NCBI GenBank assembly: GCA_965112735.1
Contig: OZ218951.1
Span: 5,022,001-5,086,000, forward strand
Source: Phaeosaccion multiseriatum
Taxonomy: Eukaryota; Protista; Ochrophyta, other classes
Direction of reading: 5' to 3'
Length of the DNA: 64,000 bases
Shown: positions 6,426 to 57,549 of the stretch, piece after piece
Layout of the letters: every line of letters begins with the position of its first letter
Numbering within the stretch: position 1 is the stretch's first letter
Made by a program: the position numbers and the translations under genes
The notes under the pieces: generated by a model
The model's input: only the letters and a program-made list of their open reading frames with translations
What the model was told of the DNA's origin: nothing
Database searches by the model: none

Positions 6426-6554
6426 GCGAATCCTTGACAAGCCTTGACATGCGAAGCAGGCGGAGGCGGAGGCGGAGGAGGAGGAGGAGGAGGAGGAGGA
6501 GGACCAGTTGAGGAGCGCACACGCGGTTGCATCTGCTCAGCTCAGCTCAGATTG

Positions 6555-7330
6555 GCTGGCGCGAAGGTGAATTGGGCGAGTGGGAGAGGGCGCACGGCAC
6601 TCCATCTAGCCTCATATGGAGGGCATGAAAGATAGTGCAGCAACTGGCTACTGTCAGCCGGCACGGAGGTCGAACAGACAGATTTGAAAGGCGGCTCAGC
6701 CCTGCGCGTTGCCTCCCGGAACGGACAGACATCACGCGGTGGTGCAGCAGCTGCTGTCGGCTGGCACTGATCCCGACCACGTGAATGACAGAGATGTTGA
6801 AGGCCGCACCCCCTTAGTGAACGATACAATGCGGGAAACGGCTGAATACATTCTCCACGAGAGTGGTGATGGCAGCTGATGGTAGCTCATCACAGCCCAT
6901 GGGCAGAGAGGAATTCGTTTGCTCCAGGCGTCTTCCGCAGGACGCCGAAGCATTGTGTGCAAGCTGCTGAGGGCTGGTGCAGCAGTGAATGCGGTCAGTG
7001 CTGGCGACGCTTCGCTTGGCATCTCAGGAAAGTCATGCTCGTGTCGTGGAGGAACTCATCTGCTTGAGTACTGAGGAGGCTACACGAAAGAAGCTGCTGC
7101 CAGGGAAAGCTTCACTGGCAACGGCTCTGACAAGAACACGAGAGCTAAGCGATGCAGGGATCTGTAGTGAATTCCTCCCGGCTGCGGACAGGCAGCACTT
7201 TGCGTCCCAAAGCGCGTTGGACCTGATGCGGGGCACTGACCGTCTCTTTGGCAAGGAAGGGAGGCTGAAGGTGTCGCAGAGAGAGCTTAGCCCTGAGGTG
7301 CTGCAGGAGGTGGCGGAGGAGATGGCATGA
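6555..7330 (+). pseudogene. 5'-truncated, frameshifted ankyrin-repeat gene of the same family as 26315-28023 and 34781-36576
   Basis: AGAKVNWASGRGRTALHLASYGGHER is followed by frameshifts and stops, fragments such as HARVVEELI, and the intact family tail DRQHFASQSALDLMRGTDRLFGKEGRLKVSQRELSPEVLQEVAEEMA*. Confidence 0.85.
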
Positions 7331-12740: not shown

Positions 12741-15071
12741 TCAAGATAAGAGCTTACCCTCTCGCAAGTCGTCCCTGAGGGGCTTGAGGAACTGCATGAG
12801 AGGCGTGCCCCCCGTGCCCTTTCCCCCGGCGGCGTTGCCCGGGTGGTAGTCGTCCTTCTCCTCTTCCCTCCCTCTCCCTCTCCCTTTCCCACGCCCTCCT
12901 GAACCCCCCTTTCCCTTCACCTCCTCCTCCTCCTCCTCCTCCTCCTTGATGGTCTTCTTCTTCTCGCTCTCTTTGTTGGGCTTACCCTGCTGCTGCATAA
13001 TGTACTGCGTAACGATGGAGAGGTGCGCTGTGCGAAAGTCGTCCAAGGCCTGCAGACATTCGTTGTACGCTGCTCGAAGAGACACCCCACTCACACTCAC
13101 ACTAACCGGAGCAGCAGCACCAGCAGCAGCGCTCTCCTCCCACTGTCCCTGTCCCTGCCCCTCCTCCTTCTTCCCCTCCTTCGTCGGCCGCCCCTCCCCC
13201 TGCCCCTCCTCCAGCTCCTGCTCGAAAGACAGCACAAAGTCTCTAATCATAGACCCCCTCTCCTGGCCGGTCACAAGGCCTAGGAACCTCGCGTGATCTG
13301 GAGGCATATAGTCACGCATGGCCCTCAGAAAGCCGCTGCTCTGATGGCGACTGTGGTCGATGCCCAACGCGCCATCAAACGCCGGTACGAGAGAGCTCTG
13401 AGCAGCGCTTCCTCCAAAGAACATCATCCTTGTCCCGAGGGGGGAGAAGACCGCTGGGCTAGTGCTTGCTTCTGCTGCCGACCTATCCCCCACACCCCCC
13501 TCCTCCTCCTCCTCCTCCTCCTCCTCCTCCTCCTCCTCCTCCTCCTCCTCCTCCTCCTCCTCCACAACAAGAACCCCTTCGTACAGCACACCGTCGGGGA
13601 GGGTGGGGTTCTCCTTCCAGCCGGACAGGAAGGGCCGCACACGCTGGTAGAAGATGAATGGATGGCAGCTGACGGTCATGCGCAGCAGAGCGCGGCGCAT
13701 GCGGCGGATGGAGTAGGCGATGAAGAGGAGGCAGGCGTGCACCACTTCCGCCGCCTCTGCCACCATCGCCTTCGCCGCTTCTGCCTCCACCGCCGCTGCT
13801 CTTCTTCCCTGCTGCCCCGCCCCTCCTCCTCCTCGTCCTCCTCCTCGCGCTGCAGAGGCAGAGGCAGAGGCAGCCACTCTGAAGCCAAGTCCCTCCTCCT
13901 CGTCCTCCTCCTCCTCCCTCTTGCTCGCAGAGGCTTCATCCTCATCATCACCATCACCACCATCATCATCATCATCATCATCATCATCCCCACCAACACG
14001 AGCAGTCACGGCTCGACGTGTGCGAGCCGAAAGGATGGCCTCCTGCGCCTCCAGAATAACTGCCATGGAGGGACCGCCCACGGCCTCAATCTCCACTGTC
14101 AGGAGGTAGAACCAGGCCTCGTCCACGCCTCCGAGAAACTGGTACAACGTGGCCAGATTCTCCGTGGCAATTGGTCCTTCGGGGTCGAGCCGGCGCCAGT
14201 TGGAGAGCACAATGGACATGTGCGTGAGGATGGGAGGTATCTTCATCACCCTCGTCGCCAGTGTGTATAGTGGCACCGCCACACCCGGAGGGAGCGAGGC
14301 CTCGGGAAGTGGGGAGGAGTGGGCAGAGTGGCCCCACACGTAGGCATGGGCCAGCATGGATAAAAGAGCGAGGGCACGGCGCTGCTCAGACGTGGTGGGC
14401 AGCAGCGTCGCCGCCTCACGGGCTATCATCGCGTCAGTATCACCCCCATCACCACCACCACCCTGGCCTTGTTCGCCTGTCGTAAAATCTCCTCCTCCTC
14501 CTCCTCCTCCTCCTCCACCTCCACCTCCTCCTCCTGCTGCTGCTGCTCTGCTGCTGCTGCTGCTGCTGGGGAAGAGAATGGGCAGGCTCCGAAGGCGCCG
14601 TCTGATCTGACCGGACGCGATGAGGGCAGGCAAGTCCGCCACAAGCTCTTCCCAGGGGTCCAGGGCGGGATGAGAGAGCCGCAGCAGAGGGTCCTCGGCG
14701 GGCAGGAAGCCTCGCACAGGGTCTACAGACAAGTCGCGGAGCAGCCTCCGCGTTGATTCTCGCAGCGGGGGCGCTTTCATCGACGGCTCTTCTACCGCTA
14801 CTGCTGCTGTTGCTGATCCTGCTGTTTCTTTTTTTCCTCCTTCTGCTGATCCTGATGCTAAGGACGGCGCCATCTCTCTTGGGGCTCCATGGTGGATGGA
14901 CGAGGTGCTATCCATCCTGCCCTCATCCCAGCTCCTTCTCCTCCTCCTCCTCTGTCTCTGGTAGTAGCAGTAGTAGGATGCGACAGAGGTGGCTCCTAAG
15001 AGAAGCAGCAGTACTTCGTAGCGAGAGGGCTCACGCTTCCCTCCGCTTCTCCTCCCCGCCCATCTATACAT
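12741..15071 (-). CDS. IDO: Indoleamine 2,3-dioxygenase family heme enzyme with low-complexity insertions
   Basis: RGFLP..DPL, LAHAYVWG, PPILTH...NW, GGVDEAWFYLLTVEIE, FYQRVRPFLSGW, GGSAAQSSL, MRDYMPPDH, FRTAHLSIVTQYI and GTGGTPLMQFLK are the canonical IDO motifs. The ORF is uninterrupted. Confidence 0.95.
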   Translation of the reverse strand: MYRWAGRRSGGKREPSRYEVLLLLLGATSVASYYCYYQRQRRRRRRSWDEGRMDSTSSIHHGAPREMAPSLASGSAEGGKKETAGSATAAVAVEEPSMKAPPLRESTRRLLRDLSVDPVRGFLPAEDPLLRLSHPALDPWEELVADLPALIASGQIRRRLRSLPILFPSSSSSSRAAAAGGGGGGGGGGGGGGGDFTTGEQGQGGGGDGGDTDAMIAREAATLLPTTSEQRRALALLSMLAHAYVWGHSAHSSPLPEASLPPGVAVPLYTLATRVMKIPPILTHMSIVLSNWRRLDPEGPIATENLATLYQFLGGVDEAWFYLLTVEIEAVGGPSMAVILEAQEAILSARTRRAVTARVGGDDDDDDDDDGGDGDDEDEASASKREEEEDEEEGLGFRVAASASASAARGGGRGGGGAGQQGRRAAAVEAEAAKAMVAEAAEVVHACLLFIAYSIRRMRRALLRMTVSCHPFIFYQRVRPFLSGWKENPTLPDGVLYEGVLVVEEEEEEEEEEEEEEEEEEEEEGGVGDRSAAEASTSPAVFSPLGTRMMFFGGSAAQSSLVPAFDGALGIDHSRHQSSGFLRAMRDYMPPDHARFLGLVTGQERGSMIRDFVLSFEQELEEGQGEGRPTKEGKKEEGQGQGQWEESAAAGAAAPVSVSVSGVSLRAAYNECLQALDDFRTAHLSIVTQYIMQQQGKPNKESEKKKTIKEEEEEEEEVKGKGGSGGRGKGRGRGREEEKDDYHPGNAAGGKGTGGTPLMQFLKPLRDDLREGKLLS

Positions 15072-26314: not shown

Positions 26315-28023
26315 ATGCAGACGGCCTTCAGCACCGAGGTACAGATTGCGACACCTCTGAGAGTGTGAAAGTAGCGATGATGATGGGGTGATAGCGGCGC
26401 CCCTTGTCCCCTCACTCAGACGACGTACTCACTCCCTGTCCATGCATGATCCCCCTTACTCTCGTGCTGTTGCGGTGCGTCTCCGAGAGGCAGGCTACCC
26501 GCCTTCGTCAAGCCATCACCAGCGATCAGAGCATCAAGAAGGTGCAAGCGGCTATGAGAGCCCTAGTCGCTAAGAACGGCGGGAGGAAGGCATGCTTGGA
26601 CGAGGCCCTCGATGAGACAGGGTCTGTTCCCCTGACGGTGGCTGTACAGAAAGGGAGGGGTGACGTCATTGCTCTCTTGCTGCAGGAAGGGGTGTCGCCG
26701 AATGCTCGAGTGCTTCCAAATCACCTGACCGCGTTGCTGGTTGCGTGTCATGAATGTGATGCTGCCGCCGTACAGCAGCTCCTCTCTGCTGGTGCTCATG
26801 TCGATGCACCGGATAGCAATAATCGTACGCCGCTTATGATGGCATCTCTTAAAGGGAGCGTTGTCGTGGTGCACAAGCTGCTGTCCGCCGGTGCCAGCGT
26901 GAACTTGACTGACAGTGCTGGCAGTACGGCGTTGCACTTCGCCTCCGAGATAGGCCATCATGCCGTGGCACAGCAACTTCTGTCAGCAGGCGCGGTGGTG
27001 ACTTGGGCGAATAAAGAGGGGGTTACGGCGCTACATTACGCCTCATATACAGGACATGGGCGGATAGTCCAGCAGCTGCTTGCTGCTGGCGCGGAGGTCG
27101 GCAGAGCCGGTCTGGACGGCGCAACTGCATTATTACTATCGGCACAGAAGGGGAGTCATGCGGTGGTCCAGGAACTGCTATCGGCCGGGGCTGATCCCAA
27201 CAACGTGCATGACAGAAATGTTTCAGGCGCCACCCCCTTGGGGATGGCCACACAAAATGGACACCACAGGGTCACGCAGCTGCTGTTGACCTCCGGAGCA
27301 AATGCGAATTTGCCGAGCCAGGCAGGATGGTTTCCGCTTGGTTTGGCGAGCCAGCAAAATCATGGCCTTATTGTAGAGCAGCTGATAACAGCCGGCGCTG
27401 ACCTTGAGAGCCTTAGCGGCGAGAAGGAGAGAACTCCGTTGAGGGAAGCATCTGTGCAGGGACACCGAAGTGTTGTGCGAAAGCTGCTCAGGGCTGGTGC
27501 AGAGGTGAATGCGATGAAGAGTGACGGAGGATATGGAGCGATAGGAGCCATACACTTGGCAGCTGCAAAGGGCCATGGTGGTGTCGTCGAGGAGCTCATC
27601 TCGGGAGGTGCCGACTTGGAGATGCAGACTGTTGATGGGAACACACCTTTGCTCATGGCTGCTGGGCAGGGCCATAGGGCAGCGGTACGTCAGCTTCTGT
27701 CGGCGGGTGCGGATCCTGAAAAGGAAATTGACTCCTTCACGGCCTTGTTTTTTGCTGCCGTGGACGGCAACAGCGGGGTGGCGCTGGAACTGCTCGCCGG
27801 AGGAGCCTCACTGACAAGGGCTTTGTCTCAGGCGCGAGCTGATAACGATGTAGCAGCGATGGAGTTCCTTCTGGCCACGGACAGGCAGCATTTTGCGTCA
27901 CAGAGCGCGTTGGACCTGATGCGGGGCACTGACCTTCTCTTTAGCAAGGAAGGGAGGCTGAAGGTGTCGCAGAGAGAGGTTAGCCCTGAGGTGCTGCAGG
28001 ACGTGGCGGAGGAGATGGCATGA
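26315..28023 (+). CDS. Ankyrin-repeat protein (~12-13 repeats) with conserved family C-tail; exons 26315-26338 and 26494-28023
   Basis: Repeated G.TALH.A...GH..VV..LL.AGA units. Short first exon MQTAFSTE is spliced to ATRLRQ..., the same structure as the paralogue at 36576-34781. Confidence 0.92.
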
Positions 28024-28384
28024 TGAAAGGGGCACCTCTCGCCTGCAGTGTGGTCAGGGTGTTGGGAAGGTGGGATGGCGATGGGTTGAGGTCGAGGAGG
28101 AGGGCGAAAAGCCCGGAGAGCATCAGTTCCACTGGCAAGTGGGGCGATGTGTCGAACGCATAATTAAAATGGATTATTGGTAAGCTGGGTGCAGTAGAGA
28201 GCACTGGCGGGGCGGTGCTATTTTATACAAGTAAAATTGTTGAACGATAATGGAAATGGGGGGACGAATTTTACGCACGGGATAGTGTCGAGCGTTACAG
28301 AAAATTGGCGGCGGCCGAGTTGCATTAGACCCCCCTCTGACAAAGGCGTGGGCAAGAGACGAGAAGCCAGAAGGATAGTGAAGG

Positions 28385-28719
28385 ATGCAAGGCGATGGAG
28401 GCGTGGAGGAGGAGGAGGAGGAGAAGGAGGAGGAAGGGGGGAACGGAGACCAGACCGGATGGGGGGTGGATGAAGGCGGCCAAGAGCTCCTGGTAGAGCG
28501 TGATTCGGGTCACCCTAAAGAGCATGATGAGCTGGCTCCCAAAAAGGATGAGCATTTAGCAGAGAGGGAGGGGCAGCAACATGCGGGAGGGGTGGACAAT
28601 AGCAAACTTGCGGGAGCTGAGCAGCCGCGACAGGAGCAGCAAGAGGAGCAGGTGCTGCAGGAGCAGCTCCATCTGCGGAATCTCCAGCAGCAACAGCAGC
28701 AGCAGCAGCAACAGCAACG

Positions 28720-28753
<34 letters not shown>

Positions 28754-29199
28754 GAACAACTGCAGCAGCAGCAGCAGCAGCAGCAGATCCTGCTTCGCGA
28801 GCAGCTTCAGATGGAAGCGCAGAGGCAAGCTCAGGCTCAGCACGACGTACACCTGATTGCAATAGCGGGGGGAGAGGTCGTGGACACGCAGCAACAAGAG
28901 GACAATGCAGCCCTGCTGGCCCTACCCCCACCTATGGCCGAGTACCACCAGAACGACCCCTGGGTGCAGCGCTTCGTGTCCAAGCAGGGCGACACATATG
29001 TCTTCGATGTCGAGTGAGTAGCTATGGGAGACTTGTCGGGAGGTTTCGCGGAGCAGCAGAGGCCGCCCACGTTGTTTGACGTTCTAAAGAGGGACACATA
29101 TGGCGGCTGGCTGGCCTGGCACAGCTTCTAGGTGGCTGGTGGGCAATGCGCAATGAGCCTCTCGGGCGAGTGGAGGGGGCAGGGTAGAGTTCACACACA

Positions 29200-29238
<39 letters not shown>

Positions 29239-32200
29239 GAGAGAGAGAGATTCAGTTTTTGGTGCCCCTATGCATCTGGCGCCAAGTTGCGAGGCTCCTT
29301 CGCTTTCCTTGAGAACAAGCGAACGTCCAGACTATGCGGCAGAGCATTCTCTTCTCAAATACCTCTGATGCCCCGCCCCCTCCCTCCCCCCCCCCCTCCC
29401 TCCCTCCCTCCCGCCCTCCTGCCCTCCCTCCCTCGCGCCCTCCCTCCCGCTGCCCAACCCAACCCTACCCCTCCCCATCCCTCCCAAAGAGCAATGGCCG
29501 GTCTGGAGAGCGTCGCTGGAGAGATGTTTATGCATATGGTGCAACAGCACGCTCAGCAAGCCGCCGCTAGAGACGACTTTGGCCTCAGCCTCGCGCCTGT
29601 CGGGCCTGTGGGTACACAGGCCAACCCTCTGATCAGAGGCAAGCAGCACCCGACCTCTCTGCTGGATAGGCCTCTTGCGGGCGAGGACAGTAGAAGGCAC
29701 TATACGGCTTTTCGAAAAACCTTTCTGGACGACGTGAAGTCGGCTTCGGTCCAAGTGGAGGAGGCATATGCTGAGCAGTATGCTTGTAGGGAAGGATATA
29801 GGTGAGAGTGGGAGGGCGGGGGGGTACTTGCAAACAACACACACATACACATTCACACACACGCACACAAACAAACACGCTGTTACTGCTGTATCACCAA
29901 CTCCTGCTGCTGCTGCTGCTGCTGCTGTTGTTGCTGTTCCTGCCAAGGCATTGGCGCAAGCCGGGCAACACGTGGTCACGGCAACCTCGCTTCAAGAGGG
30001 GGGGGCAAGGAGGGCTTGAGCACAACCCCAGCAGGAGGGGCGTGGGGGGCATGAGGGAGACCTTCTACGATACGAACACGGGCAGCAAGTCCTCTCTCGC
30101 CAGGGTGGGTGGGTGGGTGGGTGGGTGGGGGAGTGGGTGAGAGGATGGAGGGTTGGGTGGGTGGGTGGGTGGGTGGGTGGGTGGAGGAGTGGGTGAGAGG
30201 ATGGAGGGTTGGGTGGGTGGGTGGATGGGTGGGTGGGCGGAGGAGTGGGTGGATGGTTGGGTGGGCGGGGGAGTGGGGAGGGATAGTGTGGGTTTGGGGT
30301 CGGGCCGAGTCAAAGTGATCTCACTGCAGCTACTGACAAGCGAGAGAGCCGAAGCCTCCCTTTTGGATCGGACTTCGTAGTGCTTACGGTTCTCCTTAAT
30401 TCTCCCGTACTCCCATCACTCGCTTGCTTGCCTACTCCCTCGCTAACTCTCGCACCCACTCCCTCACTCCGTATTCAGTCAGTCACTCAGTCACTCCCTC
30501 CCTCCCTCCCTCCCTCCCTCCCTCCCTCCCCCCCTCCCTCCCTCCCTCCCTCCCTCCCTCCCTCCCTCCCTCCCTCCCTCCCTCCCTCCCTCCCTCCCTC
30601 CCTCCCTCCCTCCCTCCCTCCCTCCCTCCCTCCCTCCCTCCCTCCCTCCCTCCCTCCCTCCCTCCCTCCCTCCCTCCCTCCCTCCTTAGGCCGTGCGAAC
30701 GTCGCGCATAGGAGAGTCGCTGAGCAGGCGACAGCCCCGCTTCGTTAACAAGCCCACAGAACAGCTCACCCCGGGGCCCACTGCGTACGTCAAGGCCGAC
30801 AGATGGCAGGCACGTGGGGCGGACGAACAATCACACCCTCCTCCAGCACGACTACAGCCACAACCCTCCTGTTCTTTTGCTTTCTCTGACGACACCTTCT
30901 TACTGCCCTTTGTGTCCGCTCATCCGCCTCTTCCCCCCCCTCCGAACCCACTTCGCTTCCCCACCTTTGCTTTGGATGTTCTCGTGGCCCCGTCCTCGAT
31001 CGGAAAAACAACACACACACAAACAAACAAACGAACTACCAAACGAACTAACAAATTAACAAACCAACTGACTAACAGGTGCACCCGGTGTGCGGGGAGA
31101 TACCCAAGTCTTCTATGTTTAGGGAACCCACGCCAAAGCCCCGCCCGCCCCGCTACTGGGTCCCGCCTCCCGAGGACCCGTCTACAGAGCTCCACATTGA
31201 CGCGTTTGGTAGAAACAGGGTCAGCAGCAGCAGAGAGCAGCAGCAGCAGTTGGTAGTACAGCAGCAGCGGCCCCACACTGTGAACAGCATATGGTAAGAG
31301 CGGGGGGAGCCTATGAATGAACTACGTGTGAGGTGTGTTGCTGTCGATCAGTCAGGCCGTCAGTCCTTCCTTCAGTCAGTCCGTCAGTCAGTCAGTCAGT
31401 CAGTCAGTCAGTCAGGCCGTCAGTCAGTCAGTCAGTCAGTCAGTCAGGCCGTCAGTCAGTCAGGCAGTCGGTCAGTCAGTCAGTCAGTCAGGCCGTCAGT
31501 CAGTCGGTCAGTCAGTCAGTCAGTCAGTCAGTCAGTCAGTCAGTCAGTCAGTCAGTCAGTCAGGCAGTCAGTCAGTCAGTCAGTCAGTCAGTCAGTCAGT
31601 CAGTCAGTCAGTCAGTCAGTCAGTCAGTCAGTCAGTCAGTCAGTCAGTCAGTCAGTCAGTCAGTCAGTCAGTCAGTCAGTCAGTCAGTCAGTCAGTCAGT
31701 CAGTCAGTCAGTCCGTCGATGGGTTGGTCGGTGGGTCGGTCGGTCGGTCGATCAGTCACTCATGCGGTTCAGTTGGTCCGTCGCGTAACCCCCCCTCCCT
31801 CTCTGTCTCCCTCGCCCTCCCCTTCTCCAGGCCTATGACCACTCGGAGCATACAAATGGCGCCGTCTGTAGTGAGTCGGCCCTCCTCCTACGCCCCCAAC
31901 CCGGCCGGCCACACCAGCAACCACTTCGGGACAACGAGGCCTTGCCCCAGCCCCAACCCGAGCACCTGCACCGGCCAACAGGGCGATGACGTCACTGAGT
32001 GGCGAGGCGCTCGACGAGGAGTATCGGCTCCACCGGCCCGGCCAGGGACAGAGGGGGGAGGAGAAGGAGGAGGAGAATGGAGACGAGCAGGGGGGGGTGG
32101 GGAGGGTAAAGAGAACAACAACGACCGGAGGGGCTCCTGCTCTTCGCTGCGGCTGTCGACAGGCGTGGCAGGGCACGTCAGTATACGAGGAGGGAAGGGC

Positions 32201-34554
32201 AGAGGGAGTCGAGGAGGGACCCCAAGTCGAGGTAGGAGGCGGCCGCTGACGTCACACAGGGGGGCAGATCGGGGGCGCCCCACGGTTTCTTCGTTCGGCA
32301 AGTCCATGAGAGTGGTAAGTACGCCAGCGGGGATGGCAATGGATGCAATGGGTGGCAATGGATGGCAATGGATGGATGGATCTCCCGCCTCCTCCCTCTT
32401 GCCTCTCCTTTCTCCTCTCTCCTCTCTCCTCTCACGACCCACCCACTCACCCGCCCTCCCGCCCCCCACCCACTGACCCACCCACTCCCCCCACCCACTC
32501 ACCCACTCACTCACCCACCCACTCACCCACCCACTCACCCACTCACTCACCCACTCACTCACCCACTCACCCACTCACTCACCCACTCACTCACTCACCC
32601 ACTCACTCACCCACTCACTCACCCACTCACTCACCCACTCACTCACCCACTCACCCACTCACCCACTCACTCACCCACTCACTCACCCACTCACTCACCC
32701 ACTCACTCACCCACTCACTCACCCACGCATGCACCCCAACCACCACACATGTGTCACCAATAGATGTTCTCTGAGGACGCCCAACGCCGGCAAGAGAGTT
32801 ACGTAAAGCACTACGTAAGGGAGACCGTCGCTGTGGCCCCCTCCGACCAATCCATCGTCTCATTAATGCACGGGTCCACCGTCCCCATTATCCGCTGCCG
32901 CACCTCTGGCGCGGTGGGCATGCCTTCTCATCACTCTGGAGGTGGCCCTGGTGGTGGTGGTGGTCGTGATCGGGGTATACGGTCGCCATGTCACAGCGGC
33001 GCCGCTCCTCCTCTTCCTCTTGCTCCTTCTTCTCCTGCTTCGCCTTCTTCTCCTTCCTCTCCTTCCCCTCCTTCCGCTTCTTGTCCTTCTCCTTCTCCTT
33101 CTCTCATCCGCCTGGGCCAGCAGCCGCAGCACCAGCACCAGCAGCAGCACCACCAGCAGCAGCATCCGTACCAGCATACACATATCCATAGTGCCAATGA
33201 CCCCCCCGAGAGTGGAGGGGGAAGCGGACGCGTAGTATTAGGAGGAGAAGGGGGAAGCAGCGTCTCACCACCATCGGAGTCGCGCTTCAGCGCCGGTGGT
33301 GGGCCTGTTGGTTCTCCGACGAGCGGCGGCGGTGCCAGTGGGTCGGCAGCACCACCCTCCTCCATTCATCACCATTATGAAGGCAGCGTGGGAACAGCAG
33401 CCAGCAGCAACGGGTATGTCTGGACAGAGGGCTTCAACTTTAACACTGGTGGGCTCGAAACGTCACTCTCCGGCGGCGGGCAGGCAGGAGGGGCTGGGGG
33501 TGGAAGCTTGTGGAGCAGCGTTCGTCTGGGGGAAGAGGAGGAGGGGGGAAGGGAGGAGTGGCAGCAGGGTCAGGGTCAGGGTCAGGGTCAGGGTTATCAT
33601 CAATTTCAGCAACCACTAGGTGCTTTTGACTCATCTGCGCGTGTGTGCGTGCGTGTGCTGAGTCCCTCCCCTCCAGAGGGGGCCAGAGGAGACCGTTGGG
33701 GGGGGGGGTCAGGACCTGGAGCAGGAGGAGGAGCAGGAGAAGGAGAAAGAGGGTGGGGAGGAGGAGGAGGAGGAGGAGGAGGAGGAGGAGGAGGAGGAGG
33801 AGGGGTGGGGGGAAACTCTTTATCAGCTCGCGATGGAGACAGAGAGGGCCGGGACAGGGACAGAGACAGAGACAACGCGAGGGGCAGACACAGCAGCGAC
33901 ATGCCGCAGATTATTGAGGCCCGACGCGCACCCACTGCCAAGCGTTTCATGTCAGCCACCGCCGAGCAGAGAGAGAGGGCGGCGCTCGCAGCGAAGAAGG
34001 CGAGAGAGACCGCGGCGGCGGCGATGAGAAGGAGGAGGGGAGAGGGAGAGGAGGCAGCTGCTGCTGCTGCTGCTGGTGGTGGTGGGACTGGGCCATCTTC
34101 TCATCCACACGTGTTGTTCTCCACCTCCCCCGCCTTGGCGACGACGATGGCGAGACCGCAGACGTGCCCGACGATGCTACTCACTCCGACGGCGACGGGG
34201 AGGAAGAGAGGGATGGCAGTAGATGGGAAGAGGGAAAGGGAGGGGGAGGGGGAAGCAGGCGATGGAGGGGGAGGTGAAAGGGGACATGTGGGAGAGGGAG
34301 GAGGAGGAGGAGGAGGAGGAGGAGGAGGAGGAGAAGAAGAAGACGAGGGGTCTTTGTCTCTTTCTCTTCTCACCAGAGGTGCCAAGCAAGGAGGCCCAGG
34401 AGCGTGAGTCACAGTTAGCGAAGGTTCACCACCCTACATGGGACAACATTCGGCCACTCTCAAGACCTTGCGCCATCCGTGGGCCGTTTCGAGTGCTTCC
34501 GGGACCCTCGCTGTCCGAGTACAAGCCAGGCGCGCCGCGGCAAGGTAAAGGACG
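28385..34554 (+). CDS. Hypothetical multi-exon low-complexity protein (Q/G-rich)
   Basis: Frame-compatible exons ~28385-29013, 29489-29801, 29949-30104, 30690-30809, 31079-31292, 31831-32314 and 32764 onward. One TPGPTAY motif resembles the PGP.AY repeats of axonemal proteins. The 3' end is uncertain. Confidence 0.5.
30495..30685. repeat. (CCCT)n microsatellite at intron 3' end
   Basis: Direct reading; it ends immediately before the TTAG acceptor. Confidence 0.95.
31349..31712. repeat. (GTCA)n microsatellite in intron
   Basis: About 360 bp of GTCA units with a few GGCC interruptions. Confidence 0.95.
32470..32725. repeat. (CACT/CACC)n compound microsatellite in intron 3' half
   Basis: Direct reading. 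Confidence 0.9.
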
Positions 34555-34780
34555 CCGAGCACTATCCGTTTTCTTTACTACTACGAAGTATTACATAATT
34601 ATATATATGTACTCTTGGTCAAGAGTCGTCTAGCGATCGAATGCCTGCCCACCTATCCGAAGAGTGTGACAGACGAGTACCCTTTTCTCGTCCTCGTCGC
34701 TCCTCGTCGTGGCCCTCTCGCCCTCAGACACCACCACCACCACTCCTCCTTCCCAACGCCCCTGAGAGGTGCCCCTTCCA

Positions 34781-36576
34781 TCACGCCATCTCCTCCGCCA
34801 CCTCCTGCAGCACCTCAGGGCTAACCTCCCTCTGGGACACCTTCAGCCTCCCTTCCTTGCCAAAGAGACGGTCAGTGCCCCGCATCAAGTCCAATGCACT
34901 CTGTGACGCAAAATGCTGTTTGTCCGCGGCCAGAAGCAGTTTCACACAGGCTGCATCCCTATGTTCTCGCGCCAGAGACAAGGCCGTCGCCATTGATGCC
35001 CCTGCTGCGAGAAGCTGCAGGGCGGTCCCGCTATGCCCACTGAGCGCCGCACGAAACAAGGCCGTCCCTATACAAGCGCCTCCGCCATTGTCAGGCTCAG
35101 CCCCCGCAGACAGGAGTGCACGGACGACTTCCTCAAAGCCGAAGCCCGCAGCCAGCAACAATGCCGTAAAACCCTCAGCAGCCAGTATCTCTATGTTAGC
35201 ACCTGCTGCGATGAGCTCCTCCACGACACGAGCATGACCCCTTCCAGACGCCAGGTGTATAGCTCTATTGCCGAGCCGACTCATGGCATTCACCTCTGCC
35301 CCAGCCCTGAGCAGCTTTCGCACAAGCTTTCGATGCCCTCCGAAGCACCCCACCATGAGCGCTGTTCTCCCCGCCCCACCGCTACGGCTCTCGAGGTCAG
35401 CACCGGCTCTGATGAGTTGCTCCACCACAGAAATGTGACAGTTCTGCGTCGCTAGAACGAGCGGAAAGTGTCCGTCGAGGCTTGCCACATTCACATCTAC
35501 CCCGGAGGTGATGAGCAGCTGCGTGACCCTGTGGTGTCCGTGTTGTGCGGCCATCACTAAGGGCGTACGGCCATCAACATCTCGAACATCCGCGTGGTGA
35601 GGATTCGCGCCGGCCGAAAGCAGCTTCTGCACCACAGCATAATGCCCGTTCTGGGAGGCAAGTGGCAAGGCTGCAACACCTTCGAAATCTGCCTTTTCGA
35701 CCTCCGCGCCGGCAGCGAGGAGCAGCTGGACGATCCTTTCATGTCCTCCAAGTGAGGCTTGATGGAGGGCCGTACGCCCCGTCCTCGTCACCCAGTCCAC
35801 CTCTGCACCCGCCGACAGCAGCTGCTGCGCCACTGCATCAAAGCCGTGGTCTGCCGACAAGATCAATGCCGTAACACCACCCTTCCTGGCCAAGCTCACA
35901 TCGGCACCGTTGGCGAGCAGCTTGTGCACAATCACAACGGATCCGACTGAGGCGGCCCACATCAGAGCCGAATATCCGTCTTTCAGCACAGCATTCACGT
36001 GAGCACCTGCAGAGAGGAGCTGCTGTATGGTCGCAGGGCAGGCAACAGCACATGCAGTCATCAACGGAGTAACACCGGTTACAGGCTCCCGGGCATTGGC
36101 CGACGCCCCCTCCTGCAGCAAAAGAGTGATGATGTCACCCCTCCGTTTCTTGATGGCCGAGTGCAAACCCAGATGATACCCTGCCTCATCGAGAGGCTCG
36201 TCCAAGCACGCCGTGCTCCCTCCGTTCTTAGCGACGAGGGCCTTGACGGCCGCGTGCACCACATGGAGGCTCTGACTACCGGTAATCGTATCGTCGAGGC
36301 GCGTGCCCTGCCACATGCAGCACATAGCATCGCAGAGAGCGAGGGGCAAGAGAGAGAGAGAGAGAGAGAGTGGAAGCACATGCAGTGCATCTGTTGAGTA
36401 GGGTCGAATGCGGTTGGGCTAAGGTAAGGGGGAGGGCGAAAAGAAGGGAGAGGACCAAAACAGAAGGGATGGAAGGAAAGGAGGACTGATTTAATTTCCC
36501 TCCCTTCCCTCACCTCGTCGCTGAAGGCCTCCTCCAAGGGGCTCGAGTCCTTAGAGCAAGGAGAGGATCTGGCCAT
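34781..36576 (-). CDS. Ankyrin-repeat protein (~12-13 repeats) with conserved family C-tail; exons 36576-36514 and 36307-34781
   Basis: Ankyrin consensus repeats. First exon MARSSPCSKDSSPLEEAFSDE is spliced to GTRLDD...; tail DKQHFASQSALDLMRGTDRLFGKEGRLKVSQREVSPEVLQEVAEEMA*. Confidence 0.92.

Positions 36577-46773: not shown

Positions 46774-57549
<10,776 letters not shown>

Follow-up and report, generated by a model that had tools for sequence, protein, structure and literature searches.

Why should proteins whose ankyrin repeats have diverged so far end in almost the same 47 residues? The question is raised by a window of 64,000 nucleotides from the alga Phaeosaccion multiseriatum (C2:5,022,001-5,086,000 in a 67 Mb assembly of 22 contigs), in which the initial annotation had placed three ankyrin gene copies. 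All three were located at those positions: the open reading frames (ORFs) of gene A (26404-28023, + strand) and gene B (34781-36379, - strand), the Pfam domains of which are all ankyrin, and a decayed copy C. Aligned over 513 residues, the frames of A and B are 59% identical, while their last 47 residues, the “tail”, are nearly identical; in exon 2 outside the tail, identity amounts to 67% at the nucleotide level and 56.6% at the amino-acid level. On the sequence evidence, and with modest confidence, these genes are taken to belong to a lineage-restricted multigene family of intracellular ankyrin binders with a variable face and a constant C-terminal module, which would form a recognition repertoire.

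Extent of the family and uniformity of its tail

A 23-nt tail probe has four matches in the window against 0.01 expected, and its genome-wide count at up to three mismatches is 74, against 5 with the reversed control; since both counts are far above expectation or control, chance is excluded as the source of the tail copies. Most matches lie at C2:4.13-5.66 Mb, with minor groups on contigs C1, C3, C5, C6, C9 and C10 and at C2:2.0-2.24 Mb. Sixty copies were read for the family comparison, and their tail-ended open frames range from 28 to more than 858 residues. A six-frame search with a tail profile yielded 239 candidates, of which 150 were scored; 66 matches reach at least 89 bits, 44 of them ending open frames of 400-1007 residues and the other 22 belonging to shorter ones (<400 residues). 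Many weaker matches (33-55 bits, tail positions 4-46) close frames of 390-770 residues in arrays on C6, C15, C9 and C3 and at C2:4.80-4.86 Mb, and for 13 of these Ank_2 directly precedes the match within one open frame. A much larger ankyrin superfamily thus has the tail as its C-terminal module. The three copies first described are real, but the count of three does not hold: about 70 members have near-identical tails, and they stand inside a superfamily in which at least 150-239 ankyrin ORFs bear the tail.

A member begins with an eight-codon first exon and a common intron; the N-cap that follows is constant, the ankyrin repeats number 5-24, and the tail closes the protein. The exon MQR(T/A)FS(T/S/N)E, with GT at the expected distance, is present in 17 of the 25 paralogues that have the N-cap motif. 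Identity across copies is 84% in exon 1, 51-59% in the intron, 35-64% in the upstream DNA and 71-92% in the head. Ankyrin is matched by Pfam in 39 of 40 family members, and the family proteins show no evident signal peptide or membrane segment. Birth-and-death evolution, as proposed for these genes, is visible on both sides: birth in duplicate pairs that are 99.9% identical across 1.5 kb, and death in the strong tail matches (22/66) with frames below 400 residues.

The adjacent members L060, L061 and L073 at C9:2.562-2.572 Mb, with open frames of 806-1007 residues, contain 17-21 full-length repeats (19-24 repeat-model matches), which within each protein are 59-65% identical to each other; this suggests recent internal repeat amplification. 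Members L063-L066, L082 and L083 at C2:2.00-2.24 Mb form a diverged subgroup whose own version of the tail reads MRDIDPVF...IGPDV. Several open frames of this subgroup are truncated to 170 residues, nearly identical to each other, and start with MPWVATGGGRYQ; they seem to represent one broken copy that was duplicated several times. Across the whole genome a six-frame search gave about 2200 candidate Ank_2 matches; the ankyrin expansion of this genome is extraordinary, and the tail-bearing superfamily is just a part of it.

The near-invariance of the tail extends to its nucleotides, as had been noticed from the three copies of the window: out of 141 nt, A and B differ at 11, A and C at 7, and B and C at 12, and in the DNA alignment of the three the near-identical block begins sharply at GACAGGCAGCA. 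Divergence along the aligned genes is indeed not uniform. In a comparison of 24 full copies (276 pairs), the median synonymous (dS) and nonsynonymous (dN) divergences are 0.58 and 0.20 in the head and 0.52 and 0.28 in the ankyrin (ANK) part, against 0.10 and 0.037 in the tail. As silent and replacement changes are both about fivefold lower in the tail, protein-level selection alone is insufficient to account for it; the low divergence of the silent sites points to gene conversion, and the invariance is in large part a nucleotide-level effect.

The relationships between copies bear out the gene conversion that the initial annotation had suggested testing for. Tail distance correlates with head distance at a rho of only 0.13 and stays on a plateau of about 5% whether the heads differ by 5% or by 35%, while its correlation with physical distance on the contig has a rho of 0.67 (0.036 at less than 10 kb, 0.051 at 0.5-1.5 Mb). 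All four allele combinations (four gametes) occur in 101 of the 406 informative pairs of tail sites, that is, within 141 nt. Sliding-window identity reveals close paralogues as mosaics, in which blocks of 95-100% lie beside blocks of 37-63%, and in the close pairs L032/L080 and L073/L084 the tails are more diverged than the frameworks. The ratio of nonsynonymous to synonymous differences (pN/pS) in the tail is about 0.3, and a component of selection is supported because protein-level relatives of the tail, the matches of 33-55 bits, end ankyrin ORFs in other arrays. The tail thus appears to be under purifying selection and, in addition, to be kept alike among the copies by ectopic gene conversion, in a pattern that makes it the 3' end of the segment exchanged.

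Paralogues cease to be homologous 0-30 nt past the stop codon, and similarity between close paralogues usually collapses about 25 nt past it. The block common to A and B runs about 20 nt beyond the stop, with 4 differences in 23 nt, and in copy C it ends at the stop codon. This post-stop likeness of A and B, also pointed out initially, is real and forms part of a motif of about 30 nt, TGATGAAAGGGGCACCTCTCGCCTGCGGTG, common to at least 27 copies. Eight copies (C and seven more) have TGACAAGCTCAC right after the stop, and yet other copies differ. The motif was considered as an independent repeat and rejected as such, all of its genome matches (26/26) directly adjoining a tail. In L012 (C2:5132180-5132345) and L041 (C2:4963808-4963973) the junction “ATGGCATGA + flank” is partly tandem-duplicated right after the stop, which may be a footprint left by recombination where the unit ends on its 3' side.

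A different explanation for the invariant block is a role at the nucleotide level, either as the common target of a small RNA or an RNA-binding regulator governing all members of the family or as a homology anchor for recombination. Silent sites about fivefold less diverged than elsewhere would be expected of such a role, as would conservation that continues for about 30 nt into the 3' untranslated region in at least 27 copies, the motif being unique to that place. Broken copies also retain open, little-changed tails: the tail is open in each of ten short-frame copies, with 3-12 differences from the majority compared with 1-8 in long copies. However, similarity halts at the stop codon in at least 8 copies, and the pN/pS of 0.3 together with the protein-level relatives in other arrays indicates a function of the protein. 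Structured RNA in the tail block was rejected, its folding being no better than that of shuffled sequence (z -0.45 and -0.63). An antisense gene behind the silent-site conservation was rejected as well, the sole open antisense frame being closed in 17 of 50 tails and having no fixed ends. A nucleotide-level role is considered unlikely, and selection on the tail protein combined with ectopic gene conversion is the preferred account of its uniformity.

Variability of the ankyrin binding face

The variability of the repeats had been ascribed to non-consensus ankyrin sites. When a repeat hidden Markov model was trained on the family and entropy was computed over 404 repeats, values of 2.9-3.8 bits were obtained at repeat positions 2, 3, 5, 9, 10, 13 and 14, intermediate values (2.2-3.3 bits) at positions 17, 18, 21 and 22, and values below 1.5 bits at most of the remaining framework positions. 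In the numbering of designed ankyrin repeat proteins (DARPins), the variable positions of the family cover all five of the randomised positions tested (2, 3, 5, 13 and 14). Unlike DARPins, the family is natural, has further variable positions (9, 10, 17 and 18), varies in repeat number and ends in a constant tail.

Nonsynonymous and synonymous diversity, compared in the last 250 residues of 45 copies, is 0.53 and 0.56 at positions 2, 3, 5, 13 and 14, 0.14 and 0.29 at the other ANK positions, 0.22 and 0.38 in the C-cap, and 0.036 and 0.12 in the tail. A comparison of 11 independent close pairs, which is less affected by saturation, gave pN and pS of 0.253 and 0.181 at the face positions, 0.048 and 0.123 in the framework (pN/pS 0.39), and 0.022 and 0.073 in the tail. 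In these close pairs pN of the face exceeds pS of the framework about twofold (Fisher p 1e-20) and is also higher than pS of the face itself (p 0.013). The excess is consistent with diversifying selection on the binding face, and patchy conversion could add to it. Entropy and pN are both concentrated at the binding-face positions, in agreement with the variability first ascribed to non-consensus sites, and the per-site comparison proposed at that time separates the face from the tail (pN 0.253 vs 0.022).

Near equality of pN and pS at the face over all copies (0.53 vs 0.56) is also what could be expected if the genes were a recently amplified, largely functionless repeat, with the identity of the tails reflecting youth and conversion and the variability of the ankyrin part reflecting relaxed constraint. 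The short open frames at 22 of the 66 strong tail matches and the presence of some near-identical duplicate copies agree with such a repeat. Yet 44 of the 66 retain open frames of 400-1007 residues, exon 1 and the splice donor are kept, and pN/pS is 0.39 in the framework and 0.3 in the tail. The silent divergence of the head, 0.58, moreover shows that the family is old. A functionless repeat is therefore regarded as improbable, and a variable binding face kept on a constrained framework is the preferred reading of the ankyrin part.

Nature of the tail

The initial annotation had supposed that the repertoire might be undescribed, and none of the searches made outside this genome placed the tail in a known family. 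Pfam has no match to the tail at E up to 10. The tail profile found nothing significant among PDB sequences, among 5.8 billion proteins no relative was found when the word-indexed search was limited to the tail, and a profile search of 1.84 billion protein cluster representatives gave no tail match at E 0.001. No match to the tail was present in viral and metagenome contigs, the best value in a comparison with ESM Atlas features was 0.84, which is under the usable level, and Foldseek with a tail-only model returned nothing below E 5. Among all other organisms covered by these searches, the tail has no detectable relative.

A single weak Pfam match to DUF1843 (21 bits, under the cut-off) in 1 of 40 members was put down to chance, and a weak match to Xre_MbcA_ParS_C was dismissed likewise. 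The best profile match in the PDB, with E 0.15, pairs a stretch of a gammaretroviral transmembrane (TM) protein, RGLDLLFLKEGGL, with MRGTDLLF(G/S)KEGRL of the tail (27919-27978, tail residues 14-33); this resemblance is probably due to chance.

In the AlphaFold2 prediction for the last 180 residues, made with 40 paralogues, the ankyrin stack has a predicted local distance difference test (pLDDT) value above 90 and the tail one of 46-64. In this context the tail is modelled as a helix (ALDLMRGTDLLF), a 12-residue loop and a second helix (PEVLQDVAEEM); folded alone, it has a pLDDT of 75 and a predicted template modelling score of 0.28. The tail is hydrophilic, with a grand average of hydropathy of -0.54 and a net charge of -3, and contains none of the targeting signals PTS1, CaaX, KDEL or tail anchor. 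An EF-hand was considered and rejected: the helix-loop-helix with FGKEGRLKVSQRE aligns to an EF loop, but none of the 40 members fits the pattern and there is no Pfam match.

In ASB and poxvirus ANK/PRANC proteins a short helical box comes after the ankyrin array, at the C-terminus, and all members of the family likewise end their arrays in a short C-terminal helical module. By this analogy, the tail could be a new and very divergent adaptor box of cullin-RING ligases, similar to a SOCS box, an F-box or PRANC, and the proteins would act as substrate receptors through which diverse targets are ubiquitinated. The tail is predicted to be helical and poorly ordered alone, as adaptor boxes often are. 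The annotation had seen a loose resemblance to BC-box/cullin-box spacing, which did not survive comparison with the generally known consensus patterns, namely [STP]Lxxx[CSA]xxx[AILV] for the BC-box, LPxP for the Cul5 box and LPxE(I/L)(I/L) for the F-box start. None of 40 members matches the BC-box, Cul2-box, Cul5-box or F-box core consensus, and none matches the F-box in its loose form either. Pfam finds no SOCS_box (PF07525), F-box (PF00646, PF12937), PRANC (PF09372) or BTB in the same 40 members at E up to 0.1, nor on the tail at E up to 10, so that, unlike in ASB and PRANC proteins, these boxes are found neither by Pfam nor by consensus. The profile search of the PDB and Foldseek were empty for such boxes too, and the stretch after “SPEV”, the supposed F-box start, is just 13 residues long. 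Because the tail fits no SOCS-box or F-box consensus, the reading as a cullin E3 adaptor is unsupported, and it is held to be distinctly unlikely. In the Pfam searches, a BTB/POZ domain is also absent from the whole ORFs A and B and from 40 C-terminal parts, and NACHT/NB-ARC is absent, the whole ORFs A and B showing ANK families only.

The tail is best read as a partner-dependent docking peptide. It would become folded when bound and, as a docking or effector peptide shared by the family, would link every variable binder to one common partner, and the whole family would act as a recognition repertoire. The design of a variable binder with a constant end, which the annotation had proposed, is borne out by the hypervariable face positions and by a tail dN of 0.037 and dS of 0.10. 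Several points weigh against a recognition repertoire. Truncation or breakage affects about one third of the copies, the pN/pS within the face is a modest 1.39, part of which small-patch conversion could mimic, and the low silent-site divergence of the tail could reflect a function at the nucleotide level instead. A more far-reaching proposal, which is judged very improbable, is that the moderately conserved head and the near-invariant tail with its 30-nt 3' motif are homology arms for directed gene conversion. The approximately 70 copies, whether intact or broken, would then have their binding-face cassettes shuffled among them, perhaps into a few expressed sites or even somatically, and this would amount to VSG- or VLR-like generation of a repertoire in an alga with a new effector peptide.

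Gene structures in the window and related systems

Gene A lies on the + strand. Its exon 1, read from the sequence, consists of eight codons (MQTAFSTE, 26315-26338, with the ATG at 26315) and is followed by a GT donor. The predicted intron of 155 nt (26339-26493) has its GT at 26339 and its AG ending at 26493. Exon 2 up to the tail (26494-27879) encodes the N-cap head (ATRL...ALVAKNGGRKACLDE), about 12 ankyrin repeats and the C-cap, with a Pfam Ank/Ank_2 match at E 1e-62. The constant 47-residue tail, delimited by DNA alignment and predicted to be a helix-loop-helix, occupies 27880-28020, and a double stop (TGA TGA) with the conserved 3' motif of about 30 nt, recognised by the genome matches of the motif, occupies 28021-28050.

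Gene B lies on the - strand, convergent with gene A and separated from it by 6.7 kb. Its exon 1 of 21 codons (36514-36576) ends in ...AFSDE followed by GT; it has TTG where the family normally has ATG, and an upstream ATG is therefore presumed to be the start. The predicted intron of 206 nt (36308-36513) has its acceptor before GTRL, exon 2 up to the tail (34925-36307) encodes the head and ankyrin repeats according to alignment and Pfam, and the constant tail (34784-34924) precedes the stop codon at 34781-34783. The two genes share their intron position, as had been claimed (AFSTE/GT...AG/ATRL in A and AFSDE/GT...AG/GTRL in B), and their Pfam Ank_2 scores are 209 bits for A and 268 bits for B, with a gathering cut-off of 27.3.

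Copy C, on the + strand, has lost its 5' part and contains at least two frameshifts. Its decayed ankyrin part (6534-7186) is without a head, has an internal deletion and is in pieces in three frames, the tblastn pieces in different frames being 6534-6728, 6703-6996 and 7064-7327. The tail is nevertheless open (7187-7327) and forms with the stop the segment 7187-7330, after which comes the type-2 flank TGACAAGCTCAC. The same flank is also found on the intact copy L058 on contig C5.

Between A and B, at 28685-33803, there are the microsatellites (CAG)34, (CTCC)48, (TCAG)92 and (GGGT)44 and a 12-nt unit repeated 24 times, which yield long spurious low-complexity ORFs. An open frame of 776 residues at 12744-15071 on the - strand contains an indoleamine 2,3-dioxygenase domain (E 1e-92), and is an ordinary cellular gene situated between ankyrin copies. 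Another open frame on the - strand, of 732 residues at 47591-49786, matches the domain of family-B DNA polymerases at E 3e-36, with partial coverage of the profile; the long ORFs near it have no Pfam match.

Fungal NOD-like receptors (NLRs) with highly conserved ANK, TPR or WD repeats, such as nwd/HET-D/E of Podospora, vary in repeat number and show positive selection on the concave face, and exchange inside genes and among members of a family makes their repeats evolve in concert (PMC4986451). Repeat-number variation, a hypervariable concave face with signs of positive selection, and exchange between members are likewise features of the ankyrin family. It is unlike the fungal NLRs in having neither NACHT/NB-ARC nor an N-terminal effector domain, its constant part being the 47-residue C-terminal tail without known relatives. 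Identity between internal repeats also differs, with a mean of 43% and values up to 65% compared to about 85% in the Podospora WD repeats. Without a NOD or other signalling domain, the family is no member of the fungal NLR families.

The LRR-ROCO and NB-ARC-TPR candidate receptors of Ectocarpus are similar to the ankyrin family in their fast-evolving repeats, birth and death and diversifying selection; in Ectocarpus each repeat is encoded by one exon, variability arises by exon shuffling, and a signalling domain is attached (PMC3341825). The repeat array of the ankyrin family, in contrast, is a single exon, exchange proceeds by conversion tracts, and there is no signalling domain.

The family supplies dozens of natural ankyrin binders and clearly exemplifies concerted evolution restricted to a single short block of coding sequence. 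In plants, animals and fungi, repertoires of repeat proteins that combine a hypervariable face with a constant signalling end are the hallmark of innate immunity and self/non-self recognition. To our knowledge, far less is known about such repertoires in algae beyond the brown-alga candidates. The partner of the tail, once found, would reveal what the whole repertoire feeds into, and directed conversion, if true, would be relevant to the long-standing question whether recombination can diversify receptors in algae.

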